DNA of 64,000 nucleotides from Podarcis cretensis. Its lineage: Eukaryota. The notes beneath the pieces are model-generated. The model was not told the origin of the DNA and searched no databases. It saw nothing but the letters and a program-made list of their open reading frames with translations. The translations under genes and the position numbers were made by a program. Positions 28,489 to 47,196 of the stretch are shown in pieces. Where the stretch lies: NCBI GenBank assembly GCA_951804945.1, contig OX638153.1, forward strand, positions 76,570,001-76,634,000, read 5' to 3'. How positions within the stretch are numbered: the stretch's first letter is position 1; every line of letters begins with the position of its first letter.

Positions 28489-29376
28489 AAGTCAGATAGG
28501 AAGGAGTGGAGTGAAGAAGGCAATAAAAAGCTAAGAAGACCGGCTGCTAAACTAACTCTACAACTTCACAGGCTGAATTTGGAAGTCTGAAAACTTTATA
28601 CCGCTAGTTTCATTCATTCACCACAGATGCTTCTGTGAATTCCGAGGTCAAAGAGGGTGTTGGCAAGGTCTTCCCCTTCAAATAACTTTCCTTCCTGTGT
28701 TAACTAGAAATTGTTCCTATTTCTGACAAAATATTCCTTCATAATTCTGGCCAATGACCGTTCAAATGGAACAGGCTAGGTAGACAAAATTAACTCCAAA
28801 CACACACCACTACTCCCCTCTTTCCTTCCCAGGTTCCAAAAGAGCACCTTCCCATATTTCAATCTCCGTAGCAGTTTAAGAAGGAAAAGGCTCTTACGAA
28901 GACTTGGGATGAAACATCGCAGGGTTCCTCGTACAAAACAAAAAGAGGGGACCTTGCAGCTGTGCTTTTCTCACAAGGAAGGCGGCAGAAGCAGCATCCC
29001 AGCAGCATCACTCAAAACTGCCTAGACAAGTTGCAACTTCCATTGTTCGCTCCTAATTTGCGAGCTTGCATCAAGATTGGATGCTTTTCCGTCTCTATAG
29101 GGCTTTTTAACTCTCCCCTCTCCAGGAAATCCCGATCTAAATCATGGAAGACCCTTCTTGCATAAGCACATACACATACACGTCAGCATTATGCATCCAC
29201 ACAAGCCTCAATTCTTCAAACGAAAGACAACAATCAAAACAAACTATTGATCCGGTCTTCATTGGCTAGTATTAATTCTATGTAAAATTATAGCGGGCGG
29301 GGGTGGGGTGGGGAGATCGCACATGCAGCAGATAGTTGAACAAAACACGAATGAAGAAAGACCTTTCCATACTGAC

Positions 29377-30571
29377 CTGTGTGCGTCCTTTTGTGGATTT
29401 TGAGATTTTCCGAGCGAGCGAAGACTTTCCCGCATCCCGGGAAAGGACAAGGGAAAGGTTTCTCCCCCGTGTGGACTCGGATGTGGTTGACCAGTTTGTA
29501 TTTGGCCTTGAAAGGCTTCCCTTCCCTGGGACACTCTTCCCAGAAGCAAATGTGGTTGGACTGCTCCGGCCCTCCAACGTGCTCCACGGTGACGTGAGTC
29601 ACCAGCTCGTGCATGGTGCTGAAAGTTTTCGAGCATAATTTTTTGGGAGTCTGGTCCAGTTCGATCCACTTGCAGATGAGCTCCTGCTTGATGGGCTGCC
29701 TCATGTAGCGGAAGAAAGCCCCAGGGCCGTGGTGTGGAGCTAAATTCACGTTCAGGTTCATGCCACCGTAGCCGTGGAAGGAGGAAGCAGCAAAAGGATC
29801 TGTCCTGGAGACTGGTACTGGCGTGAAAGGTTCAGACCTGGCATACATTTCTCCAGGTAGCCCCAGCCTTATCTGTCCGTTTAGATGGCCACCTGGAGCT
29901 GCATGGGGATGTTGCTCATGGTGGAGTCCAGTAAAAAGCGAGGGAGTTCCGGCTTCTGAGTGGTGGTGGTGGTGGTGGAGGTGGTGGTGGTGGTGAGCAT
30001 GGTGTCCGGGGTAGCTACCTGTTGTTGAGACAAACATTCCATGGTGAGAACCTGTAGCAGCAGAGTGTTGATAAGGGAGCCCTGGCATGACTGGGGCTGT
30101 CAGATCTCTGCGCAGGAAGAATTCCCTACCTGATGAAAGAGCATGACTTGGGTGAGGGACTGCGTAAGGGACTGTTGTTGACTGCGCTGGGCCAAATGCT
30201 CCTGCTGGACTGGGTACCACCTCGGCTTGGCCTGTCACAGGATGGTGGGGATGAGGCTGAGGGGCAGGGCTGAGCTTAAGGGCCGCTGAGTGATGAGGAG
30301 GATGAGAGTGGTGGCGGTGGTGATGATGATGATGATGGAGAGGATGGTGGTGGTGCCCCATGTGTTCTGACCGGAATGGACTCAGCCCGAGGCGGCTTTC
30401 TGCAGCGTACTCCCCAGGGTGCGTGGGAACCATGGAGTGGGGATGCCCGGCGAAGCCTGTCATGCTCTGAGGGGAGTGGTGATGGTGGCGGTGATGACGA
30501 TGACGAGGAGCCCCTGCCAAGCCTAGTAACTTCAGCGCCGTGTTCCGTTTGGAGAGTGAAGCAGAGTCCAT
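29377..30571 (-). CDS. ZIC4: ZIC4 large coding exon (long His-rich N-terminus, ZF-NC, zinc fingers 1-3)
   Basis: [13 protein letters not shown]...[20 protein letters not shown]...[37 protein letters not shown]...HKRTHT. Phase-1 donor ACAG|GTCAGT at 29377/29376. Head-to-head with ZIC1, as in the known ZIC1-ZIC4 pair. Confidence 0.95.
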
Positions 30572-30939
30572 TACTGGGCTCCCCCAAAGCCTCCAAGCTC
30601 TCCTGGTTCTACTACAATTCTAAAAAGTCACCTGACGCCGAGGAGGGGGGAGCGAGGGAGAAAGAGGAAGAGGGAAAGAGCGGTGGAAAAACTTTTTTGA
30701 AAGTCCCCCGCCCCACCCGCAAAGAAAAAAAGGTTTTCCCCTCCCTCTCTCTTGGTCTGGACTATTTGGCTTTGTTTTGTTTTTGCTCCCTGCTCCCCCC
30801 CCTTCCCCTTTCTTTTCTCCCCCTCCTCTTCCATTATTTTGTGTGTGTGTGTTTTTCCTCCTTCCTTTTTTTTTTAATGCCTACGTGGAATCCCATACGC
30901 TTTGAGAAGCAGCAGCAGGACGCTGGGAGGCTACTGAAT

Positions 30940-31120
30940 AGCGCTTCACAGACTAGGCTCCAACCCAGAGAGCTAAACAATCAGGGCGGTCGCTGATTGG
31001 CCGAAGCTGCCTGACCGAAGTCAGCGCTGACAGGTCCCCGCTGAAGTCTGAAAAGATTTAGGAAGGGGTAAAGGGGCGGGGAGGGAGGAAGAGGACTCGG
31101 GAAGCAGTGCGCCTGCGCTG
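30940..31120 (-). promoter_or_regulatory. Proximal promoter of the long ZIC4 form
   Basis: GGCCAATCAG on the - strand (about 30993-31002) next to a GC box (GGGCGG 30984-30989), in CpG-rich DNA about 400 bp upstream of the ATG at 30571. Confidence 0.55.
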
Positions 31121-44290: not shown

Positions 44291-45090
44291 TTTTTTTTTA
44301 ACAAAGCAGGGGGAAAAAAGGAAAGTGAAGGGGGAAAAAAGCCCAAGGAGGGGGAAAAGAGACGGAAGGGGGAAAAGAGTGCAAGAACTGGAAGAGAAGA
44401 GAAAATTGCTCGCTAGTCCGCTACATTCCTCTAGCCTCTTTTTTTAAATTAAAAAAAAAAACCCAGAACTGAAGGAAGTTTAATTTTTGTTTTGCTCCCC
44501 CCTCCCCCGTCTGAGCCTGTTTCCTCCTCTCTCTTCACCATTGTTATTCGCGAGCGGAGTCTTCTGAATCTTTTCCCTCCTTCCCATTGAACCCCCCTGA
44601 AAAAGTGCAGTCCGAGAGGCGAGAGAGGGGGCGATCGGTTTTTCTGTGCGCGCGCCGATGTCTTTTTTATTCTTATTCTCCAATTTTTGCAGCTTCTAGA
44701 TTTCTTCCGCGGGCTCTGCCCACCCCTAAGCCCTCACCCACCCTCTCGTTTTGTGTGTGTGCGTGTGTGTGTTTTGGGTGCGCGGGTGCCGAAGGGGGAG
44801 TTCCTGATGTGGTCGCTTTAGTGGTGAACGTCGCGCGGACTTTTGCAAGAGAAAGAGAGAGAGAGGCTGCTTGGATTGGCGGCGGCGGCGGCGGCTCTCT
44901 TCCTCGTCGGCTGATCCGGCAGTTTGTTGGCTGCTGCTGCTGTTGTTGCTGCTACTGCTGCTTACCCCCACTTCTTCCACGTCCTTTCCCCCCCTTTCCT
45001 CCTTAATTTATATTTCCTTAAATCTTATTTCATTTTTGCATCACTTTTCCTCGGCGGTTGCTGCCGCAGCTGCCTGAGAGCCGGGAGAAG

Positions 45091-46081
45091 ATGTTGCTGG
45101 ATGCCGGACCGCAGTACCCCGCCATCGGAGTGACGACCTTCGGCTCCTCTCGCCACCACGCCACGGGCGACGTGACGGAGCGCGAGGTGGGACTGGGCAT
45201 CAACCCTTTCGCCGACGCCGGGATGGGCGCCTTCAAGCTCAACCCCAGCAGCCACGAGCTGGCCTCGGCCGGCCAGACCGCCTTCACTTCGCAGGCCCCT
45301 GGCTACGCGGCCGCAGCGGCGCTGGGGCATCACCACCACCACCCGGGCCACGTCGGCTCGTACTCCAGCGCGGCCGCCTTCAACTCCACGCGGGACTTTC
45401 TCTTCCGCAACCGGGGCTTCGGCGAGGCGGCGGCGGCGGCCAGCGCCCAGCACAGCCTCTTCGCCTCGGCGGCCGGCAGCTTCGGCGGACCGCACGGGCA
45501 CGGCGAGGCGGCGGGCCACCTCCTCTTCCCGGGCCTCCACGAGCAAGCCACCGGCCACGCGTCGCCCAACGTGGTCAACGGGCAGATGCGCCTGGGCTTC
45601 TCCGGAGACATGTACGGCCGGCCGGAGCAGTACGGCCAGGTGACCAGCCCGCGCTCCGAACATTACGCTTCGCCGCAGCTGCACGGCTACGGCCACATGA
45701 ATATGAACATGGCAGCCCACCACGGGCCGGGGGCCTTCTTCCGCTACATGCGCCAGCCCATCAAGCAGGAGCTCATCTGCAAGTGGATCGAGCCCGAGCA
45801 GTTGGCCAACCCCAAAAAGTCCTGCAACAAAACTTTCAGCACCATGCACGAGCTGGTGACTCACGTCACCGTGGAGCACGTCGGCGGGCCCGAGCAGTCC
45901 AACCACATTTGCTTCTGGGAAGAGTGTCCCAGGGAAGGGAAGCCTTTCAAGGCCAAATACAAACTGGTCAACCACATCCGAGTCCACACGGGGGAGAAAC
46001 CTTTCCCGTGCCCTTTCCCGGGATGCGGGAAAGTCTTCGCTCGCTCGGAAAATCTCAAGATCCACAAAAGGACGCACACAG
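45091..46081 (+). CDS. ZIC1: ZIC1 coding exon 1 (N-terminus, ZOC motif, ZF-NC, zinc fingers 1-3)
   Basis: ATG at 45091 begins [23 protein letters not shown], the ZIC1 N-terminus. ZOC motif [12 protein letters not shown] lies at about 45379-45414, followed by [19 protein letters not shown] and C2H2 fingers. Phase-1 donor ACAG|GTACGT follows 46081. Confidence 0.98.
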
Positions 46082-47196
46082 GTACGTCTCCAAACCAACC
46101 GACCGGGCCGAGCCGCGCGTTGCCTGTTGAAGGGAACTCTCGCGCTTTCCAAGAAGGAGCCAGCTCAAAACAAATCAAAGGGGGGAGGGGGAGGGAGGGG
46201 GATTAGGGAAGAAATATAAGGGTGGGGGCTCCTTTCTTAAACAAATCCACACCAAGAGCCGGGTTCAGTTCAGCTGGTGAATTAATTGGCACTAGAAACC
46301 AAACATTGCTTTTCTTTTTATTTATTTTTTTAAGTGGGAAAAATCAAATGTACGGTAGGGCTCTAAATGTTTCAGGAAAGAAAGGGGAGATTACGTGTGG
46401 GGTGGAGGGGAAGAGATGGCAGCGATCTGAATTGTTAAAATTTATTGGTTTTAATTAATTGGTAGTCGAGGGCACTGACTGTCTTACAGTGAGAAATCCT
46501 GCTAAATATATGGCTACCTAACCTCAGCTTTCCTTGCTATCTATTTCTCACCCTCTGTAAATATTTAATTATGTGGGGCTATTGTAAGTAATCTGAGCTG
46601 TACGAGTTTATGTATTATTACAAGGAAACGTGGGGGTTGGGAGCGCTGAAATCACTCGCAAATCACCAGCTCCCTGTTCTAACATTTCTTGTGTTGTCTT
46701 TTCCTTCTCCCTCTCCTTTTGGAAAAAGAAATCCCACAACCTGTCGTGTGTTTATCTATTTTTTTTAAAAAAAATCTAAAGCTGGCGCTATTGTGATTTG
46801 AACAGTTTAATCAGAAGTGTGCAATGCACTGCAAGTTTAATAACTAATACTACTGTGCAGCCGAGGAAGGTTATGTGTACACTAAGTAATAAATAAGGAA
46901 AGGAAGGGAAGGTAAACAAACGCCAAATTTAGCCATAAAAGTGGCAACAAACCTTCCCCTCCTTCCAAAACTGTGTGCAAATGTACTCCTTTGCCAGGCG
47001 TTCATTTTCTGGTGAGATGCCACAGTTCGCTGTTTAAAAGAAAGATAAGAAAAATGGGGAAAGAAAACAGGCTTTGATTTAATTTACTCTTGTTCACTAA
47101 AGTGGGGGTTAGAATTGGCTGTAGGTGTTGCTCCATACTATAAAAATCTAGGTGCCAGATTTCCAATTAGGTCGACTTTGTTTGTTTTTGTAATAG

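Follow-up and report, generated by a model that had tools for sequence, protein, structure and literature searches.

Arm-to-arm conversion keeps palindromes and other inverted repeats near-identical, the palindromes of sex chromosomes being an example. Exonic elements under synonymous constraint and ultraconserved elements, both defined by conservation between orthologs of different species, occur in developmental transcription-factor genes. ZIC1 and ZIC4 play key regulatory roles in the development of the cerebellum and the neural crest. For RHD and RHCE, neighbouring paralogs of opposite orientation, gene conversion on the scale of exons is on record, in a passage of PMC4824203 that cites earlier work (Wagner and Flegel 2000; Innan 2003; Kitano and Saitou 1999), and interlocus gene conversion occurs among old teleost whole-genome duplicates (PMC10503786). 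Here we describe a short coding tract that ZIC1 and ZIC4 share almost letter for letter in the lizard Podarcis cretensis, within a stretch of 64,000 nucleotides (nt) of contig OX638153.1 (GenBank assembly GCA_951804945.1, positions 76,570,001 to 76,634,000 of the forward strand; hereafter the window). ZIC4 is encoded on the minus and ZIC1 on the plus strand of the window, with their 5' ends facing each other, which agrees with the conserved head-to-head arrangement of the two genes (PMC6175831). The duplication that gave rise to ZIC1-type and ZIC4-type genes predates the quadruplication of the vertebrate genome (PMC6175831). The duplication is more than 450 million years (My) old, and because it is so old, silent sites that are free of constraint are expected to be saturated between the two genes. 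The tract is not, and its identity was probably produced by gene conversion between the two inverted exons.

A repeat search of the window returns one outstanding inverted pair, 29364-29647 and 45811-46094, whose arms of 284 nt are 94% complementary and lie 16,163 nt apart, 140 N included. The pair contains the last 253 nt of ZIC1 exon 1 and of the long ZIC4 coding exon, a stretch that encodes zinc fingers 1 to 3 (ZF1-3), is 97.6% (about 98%) identical between the copies, and is referred to below as the tract (Table 1). The original prediction, made on the letters of the window, counted six mismatches among 255 positions between ZIC1 45829-46083 (+) and ZIC4 29629-29375 (-), all of them synonymous, and an ungapped comparison reproduces this count exactly. 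In ZIC1 coordinates, with the ZIC1 base given before the ZIC4 base, the mismatches are 45882 C/T, 45885 C/A, 45891 C/G, 46008 G/T, 46011 C/T and 46059 G/A; the corresponding ZIC4 positions are 29576, 29573, 29567, 29450, 29447 and 29399. Every mismatch is at a third codon position, and the 84 encoded residues are the same in both copies. A perfect run of 116 nt inside the tract and another of 38 nt upstream of it, in the ZF-NC segment, were also claimed, and both are present. Identity ends at the splice donor, as had been noticed: the exons stop at 46081 and 29377, the GT is shared, and from the third base onward the introns have nothing in common. The tract is thus discrete, with the splice donor as its 3' end and, as its 5' end, a linker that carries a 3-nt indel, and both ends fall where homology is lost.

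Counted by the Nei-Gojobori method, 6.0 of the 54.0 synonymous sites of the tract differ, a proportion (pS) of 0.11 and a synonymous divergence (dS) of 0.12, with 0 nonsynonymous differences over 198 nonsynonymous sites. Zinc fingers 4 and 5 (ZF4-5), which complete the same DNA-binding domain on other exons and are as well conserved in protein, had been offered as an internal control, and the control holds. Between ZIC1 exon 2 (47199-47360) and ZIC4 (24206-24373), pS is 0.85 (24.2/28.5), which is saturated, as expected for a pair of this age. Silent divergence per exon, proposed at the outset as a check, therefore differs 8-fold between the tract and ZF4-5 (Fisher test, 9e-11). The first 12 ZF-NC codons have a pS of 0.53 between the two genes. 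From the codon usage of each gene outside the tract, 35.8 +/- 4.2 of the 84 tract codons are expected to be identical, against 78 observed (z = 10), and 21 degenerate codons that end in A or T are common to both copies. The 38-nt block is less telling, with pS 0.16 over 13 codons and a G+C content at third codon positions (GC3) of 1.0 and 0.8. Much of its identity may be owed to codon bias, because it is built only of common G/C-ending codons in GC3-rich stretches.

The six differences are mildly clustered within the tract (P = 0.04); each is no more than about 75 nt from one edge of the tract, and the central 116 nt have none. The 116-nt run was considered as evidence in its own right and set aside, since a run of this length is not significant given six differences (P = 0.15) and adds little alone. 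At five of the six positions ZIC1 has G or C and ZIC4 has A or T, matching the local GC3 of the flanking N-terminal coding sequence (0.91 in ZIC1 vs 0.51 in ZIC4), as would be expected for divergence after homogenisation. The GC3 of the tract itself is 0.75 in ZIC1 and 0.69 in ZIC4. Inference of the donor from composition was rejected, as these values lie between very different flanks and the GC3 order of the two genes is reversed in ZF4-5.

An outgroup was found in a metagenome scan queried with ZIC1 exon 2. The scan matched 80 loci, mostly invertebrate Zic genes, and none of the 80 is a ZIC1/ZIC4 pair from another vertebrate; a vertebrate tract is present only in locus L041 (MDSQ01089431.1). 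The last exon of L041 is 95% identical to the ZIC5 protein of a notothenioid (Dissostichus), a match by which L041 is identified as a teleost zic5, an ohnolog of ZIC4. With tract codons 38-55 masked (ZIC4 29466-29518, equivalent to ZIC1 45940-45992), silent sites of the zic5 tract are saturated in comparison with either lizard copy, with pS of 0.63 and 0.69 and nucleotide identity of 0.83 and 0.82, the latter (0.819) being that to ZIC4. In the same masked comparison the identity between the lizard copies is 0.965. In ZF4-5 the lizard ZIC4 is nearer to the teleost zic5 (nucleotide identity 0.857, with an RG insertion in both) than to its own ZIC1 (0.778). The nearest relative of ZIC4 thus switches between the tract and ZF4-5 in this three-sequence test with a distant, fast-evolving outgroup. 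A switch of this kind between adjacent exons is what interlocus conversion would classically leave as its signature. On these comparisons the saturated zic5 tract shows that the tract is not constrained at silent sites across the ZIC family, with the caveat that teleost ZIC genes also change protein within the tract. Polarising the six differences with zic5 was rejected as meaningless at saturation. L041 belongs to the same public metagenome assembly as L002, L003 and L054, which together hold several zic fragments of a percomorph fish host.

Conversion is preferred because of the 8-fold silent contrast, because the tract ends where homology ends, and because the nearest relative switches when zic5 is included. 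In the mechanism that we envisage, a break in one exon would be mended with the inverted paralogous exon, some 16 kb distant on the same chromosome, as template, with a non-crossover outcome. The converted stretch would extend only while the copies can be aligned, ending on the 3' side where the intron begins and on the 5' side at the diverged linker with its indel. Such an exchange should be invisible to selection (neutral), as the same 84 residues would be encoded by either copy, and the resulting high identity would favour further exchange. ZF4-5 would have escaped as a separate exon with only 78% identity. A crossover would turn the intergenic segment around and exchange the 5' halves between the genes, so that only non-crossover products should persist. 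The expected crossover product resembles the chimeric avian models described below. The mechanism and date of conversion are inferred.

The original prediction spoke of recent or recurrent conversion. Conversion is the part that stands, being best supported by the silent-site contrast, the boundaries and the incongruence with zic5, and 'recent' is the part that is not established. Neutral squamate rates are about 0.8-2.4e-9 per site per year, at which a dS of 0.12 would place the last homogenisation about 25-75 My ago if the silent sites are neutral, and earlier if they are constrained. If silent sites in the tract evolve ten times more slowly than neutral ones, the same dS could be very old. 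We accept conversion as the probable origin of the identity and make no claim of recency; in a single genome, ancient conversion followed by constraint would be indistinguishable from recent conversion.

Table 1. Positions, in window coordinates, of the tract, its flanks and the exons compared with it.
Feature	Position	Strand	Remarks
ZIC1 tract copy	45829..46081	+	last 253 nt of exon 1, ZF1-3; ends KRTHT plus first Gly base; GT donor 46082-46083
ZIC4 tract copy	29377..29629	-	last 253 nt of long coding exon; GT donor 29376-29375
116-nt perfect run	45892..46007	+	counterpart ZIC4 29566-29451
38-nt perfect run in ZF-NC, ZIC1 copy	45754..45791	+	all codons common G/C-ending; equals ZIC4 29698-29661
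38-nt perfect run, ZIC4 copy	29661..29698	-	base-by-base comparison
Diverged linker between identical blocks	ZIC1 45792..45828; ZIC4 29630-29660	+ (ZIC1)	3-nt indel; 5' limit of tract
ZIC1 coding exon 1	45091..46081	+	ATG at 45091; 91-93% identity to amniote ZIC1 orthologs
ZIC4 long coding exon	29377..30571	-	ATG at 30571
ZIC1 exon 2 (ZF4-5), unconverted control	47197..47362	+	pS 0.85 vs ZIC4
ZF4-5 part of ZIC4 last exon, unconverted control	24206..24375	-	exon starts at 24375; ZIC4/5-type RG insertion
Assembly gap between arms	42961..43100	.	intergenic, 140 N, about 2 kb upstream of ZIC1 ATG, in no exon

The gene models were compared with other sequences one exon at a time; for ZIC1 the query of the protein search was the part of exon 1 at 45091-45939 only. 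The ZIC4 exon is 99.2% identical to ZIC4 models of Podarcis raffonei and 98.7% identical to those of P. muralis, with the same start Met. In the protein searches ZIC4 orthologs reach down to shark, and a ZIC1 ortholog is present in chimaera. Histidine runs are abundant in the N-terminal half of the lizard ZIC4 (window 29900-30560, -). The open reading frame of the last ZIC4 exon extends about 35 codons beyond the conserved ...NLSEWYV end (CQSSGASG..., window 23924-24060, -), and the same continuation (...NEWYVCQGSG) is found at the teleost zic5 locus L041. A non-coding segment at window 44142-44285 (+), 0.8-0.95 kb upstream of the ZIC1 ATG, has a translation of 48 codons that is identical to residues 20-67 of a gene model of the owl Otus sunia (P0075). 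From this match lizard and owl must be nearly 100% identical in nucleotides here, and the segment is an ultraconserved 5' element of ZIC1.

Because an assembly gap lies between them, the two arms are on different contigs, and their 16.2-kb spacing and relative orientation therefore depend on scaffolding. The reading frame is unaffected, since this gap is in no exon. A second gap (25189-25507) lies inside the ZIC4 intron and is clear of the tract.

About 200 ZIC4 proteins were compared across the tract. The presence of what were called ZIC1-type residues (EQSNH, CPREGK) in this ZIC4 had been taken as a sign of conversion, and this claim fails, as these residues are the general state of ZIC4 outside placentals. 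ZIC4 of other lizards, snakes, birds, most turtles, most marsupials and catshark has the same tract protein as ZIC4 of this lizard; A and Q (EQANH, CPRQGK) are the placental state, and Y and A the teleost state. By this distribution the S and E residues of the lizard ZIC4 are best read as ancestral retention, and are uninformative on conversion. The ZIC1 tract protein is invariant in amniotes, and that of ZIC4 is nearly so in sauropsids; residues inside the tract do change in placental, teleost and amphibian ZIC4. Two recurrent substitutions are seen in ZIC4 only, and conversion has not erased them in the clades that carry them: P34L, in pit vipers (P0004, P0147-P0149), Anolis (P0060/P0155-P0157) and Heteronotia (P0034), and S4T, in geckos (P0163, P0164, P0167), Tiliqua (P0132), turtles and Junco. 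P34L was considered as a trace of conversion reversals and rejected, since denser sampling resolves it into clade-specific substitutions and the site also varies in amphibians and fishes.

Possible signs of exchange appear at the protein level in birds. ZIC4 of Centropus bengalensis and C. unirufus (P0077 and P0124, from separate assemblies) reads QKSCN at the tract edge; other cuckoos and about 100 other sauropsid ZIC4 proteins read KKLCS at this site, and SCN is the ZIC1/ZIC2 state in birds. Both Centropus models have the ZIC4-specific linker upstream of the tract and a read-through of the ZIC4 intron downstream of it. The change looks like a longer, genus-specific ZIC1-to-ZIC4 conversion tract; this is suspected because two adjacent replacements toward the state of the paralog stand right where the tract ends. 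In four avian models or contigs the sequence passes from one gene to the other exactly at ZF1-3. The Otus sunia model P0075 passes from part of the ZIC4 exon through the tract to ZIC1 exon 2. The other three all enter the tract from ZIC1 exon 1: Accipiter nisus P0212 leaves it in a ZIC4 intron read-through as seen in ZIC4 of Falco and Antrostomus; in Nipponia nippon (P0262/P0263), P0262 goes on to a piece of the ZIC4 intron and then to ZIC1 exon 3; and P0219, a chicken-like Logan contig, continues into a read-through of the chicken ZIC4 intron. These chimeric models are most likely assembly errors. Whether an assembler switched paths in a near-identical repeat or the recombinants are real, ZIC1 and ZIC4 must have long identical runs in birds too, which suggests that the near-identity of the two copies also exists there. 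In a further contig (P0104, from an ENA metagenome, of placental type) a ZIC4-type N-terminus joins the ZIC1 linker, the tract and a ZIC1 intron read-through; the join falls within the ZF-NC run, and would correspond to a switch at the upstream identical block.

The observations on bird proteins suggest that exchange recurs in other sauropsids. A wider version of conversion can be put forward tentatively, although we rather doubt it: inverted-repeat conversion would have recurred across Sauropsida (lizards and birds, over more than 280 My) and kept the tract in concerted evolution, occasionally with longer tracts, as in Centropus, and real crossover or inversion haplotypes might perhaps lie behind some of the avian chimeras. 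If this were true, trees of the ZIC zinc-finger domain would be misleading in part, and the tract would be a recurrent breakpoint in a key locus of neural development.

Several points weigh against conversion. The outgroup comparison at silent sites uses one distant teleost zic5, and both copies are known from the assembly sequence. The tract protein is invariant or nearly so, and the paralogs therefore offer no co-variation at the protein level. ZIC4-specific substitutions persist, such as T4 in geckos and L34 in pit vipers, which argues that conversion is not frequent everywhere. Extreme nucleotide constraint is possible at this locus, as the 144 nt at 44142-44285 have the same translation in lizard and owl. 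Silent constraint as strong as in ultraconserved elements, sustained through a combined branch length of about 1,000 My, could by estimate leave about 10% silent divergence. The tract also folds somewhat more stably than its dinucleotide shuffles, with minimum free energy z scores of -1.9 and -2.6 against -1.1 to +0.85 in control segments, which hints weakly that it may have a second function as RNA.

The last three points lead to the rival that survives best, although we consider it improbable. It holds that constraint on silent sites, through an overlapping nucleotide function such as mRNA structure or an exonic regulatory element, kept the ancestral sequence in both paralogs without any exchange. 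At least one ultraconserved non-coding block at the locus and the folding of the tract are in its favour, as is the invariance of the ZIC1 tract protein in amniotes, and near-identical copies in birds, if they exist, would fit a shared old state. The same sequence would, however, have to be held for more than 450 My in two genes while the adjacent ZF4-5 became saturated, and the tract of teleost zic5, an ohnolog of ZIC4, is saturated against both copies. Moreover, ZIC4 residues within the tract change in placentals, teleosts and amphibians, and the Centropus change toward the ZIC1 state is not predicted by constraint. The identity of the two copies would also be far above the values usual for duplicated conserved elements of that age.

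Less probable still is an assembly artefact, in which the real copies would be less alike and a short-read assembler would have collapsed (bubble-popped) differences in the middle of the repeat, or overwritten one copy with the other. The five N gaps in the 64-kb window do mark the assembly as fragmented in this region, the position of all six differences near the tract edges is what k-mers anchored at the edges would preserve, and avian assemblies probably go wrong at exactly this tract. But only copies that are already very similar could be collapsed, so a collapse might make the resemblance look greater than it is, yet could not be its origin. Both copies keep an intact frame and are flanked to either side by sequence proper to the gene concerned, the length of the central run is not significant, and at five of the six differences the base in each copy fits the local composition. 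In a word index, consulted for ZIC1 exon 1 only, 20 runs from 8 studies contain 0.87-0.93 of the sampled words of this exon, and the tract protein is the same in independent assemblies of Podarcis, Zootoca and other squamates. Finally, chance together with a codon preference common to both genes, in a strongly conserved stretch of protein, could suit the 38-nt ZF-NC run, but is refuted for the main tract by the count of identical codons and the shared A/T-ending codons, and its probability is negligible.

If gene conversion between the inverted exons is the correct explanation, it has consequences beyond this lizard. The zinc-finger domain is the part of the protein normally used for ZIC family trees, and phylogenies and rate estimates built on it would be distorted. 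Part of the apparent conservation of sauropsid ZIC4 would be borrowed from ZIC1. The tract would be a predictable source of assembly and annotation errors, of which the four avian chimeric models may be instances, and might be a point at which inversions break a bidirectional locus of development. The pair would also be a clear example of conversion lasting for more than 450 My after a duplication, where a short segment stays alignable through constraint on the protein.

A literature search for gene conversion, concerted evolution, silent-site conservation or ultraconservation of ZIC1/ZIC4, confined to one library of papers, found none describing the homogenised tract. Interlocus gene conversion is well known, and ZIC1/ZIC4 would be a new case of it rather than a new mechanism. 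Elements under synonymous constraint resemble the tract in that silent sites of a developmental regulator are far less diverged than expected, and the ZIC1 locus has ultraconserved non-coding sequence; such elements alone, however, do not make two ancient paralogs identical. Palindromes would share with the tract intrachromosomal conversion between inverted arms, but their arms are long (kb to Mb) and young, whereas the ZIC arms are about 0.25 kb of coding sequence within diverged, ancient genes. In the teleost duplicates, as proposed here, non-allelic conversion homogenises the coding sequence of paralogs hundreds of My old and interacts with purifying selection on the protein; that study (PMC10503786) is model-based and concerns whole genes on different chromosomes, whereas the ZIC case is one exon segment of 253 nt in a linked inverted pair, with a sharp local drop in dS. 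RHD and RHCE are similar in being paralogs of opposite orientation, a few tens of kb apart on one chromosome, and exchange of segments makes it hard to tell orthology from paralogy in parts of the genes. The RH pair dates only to the great-ape ancestor, a young duplication, and its genes are alike over their full length and lie tail to tail; ZIC1 and ZIC4, in contrast, predate the vertebrate genome duplications, can be aligned only in short coding blocks, and lie head to head.

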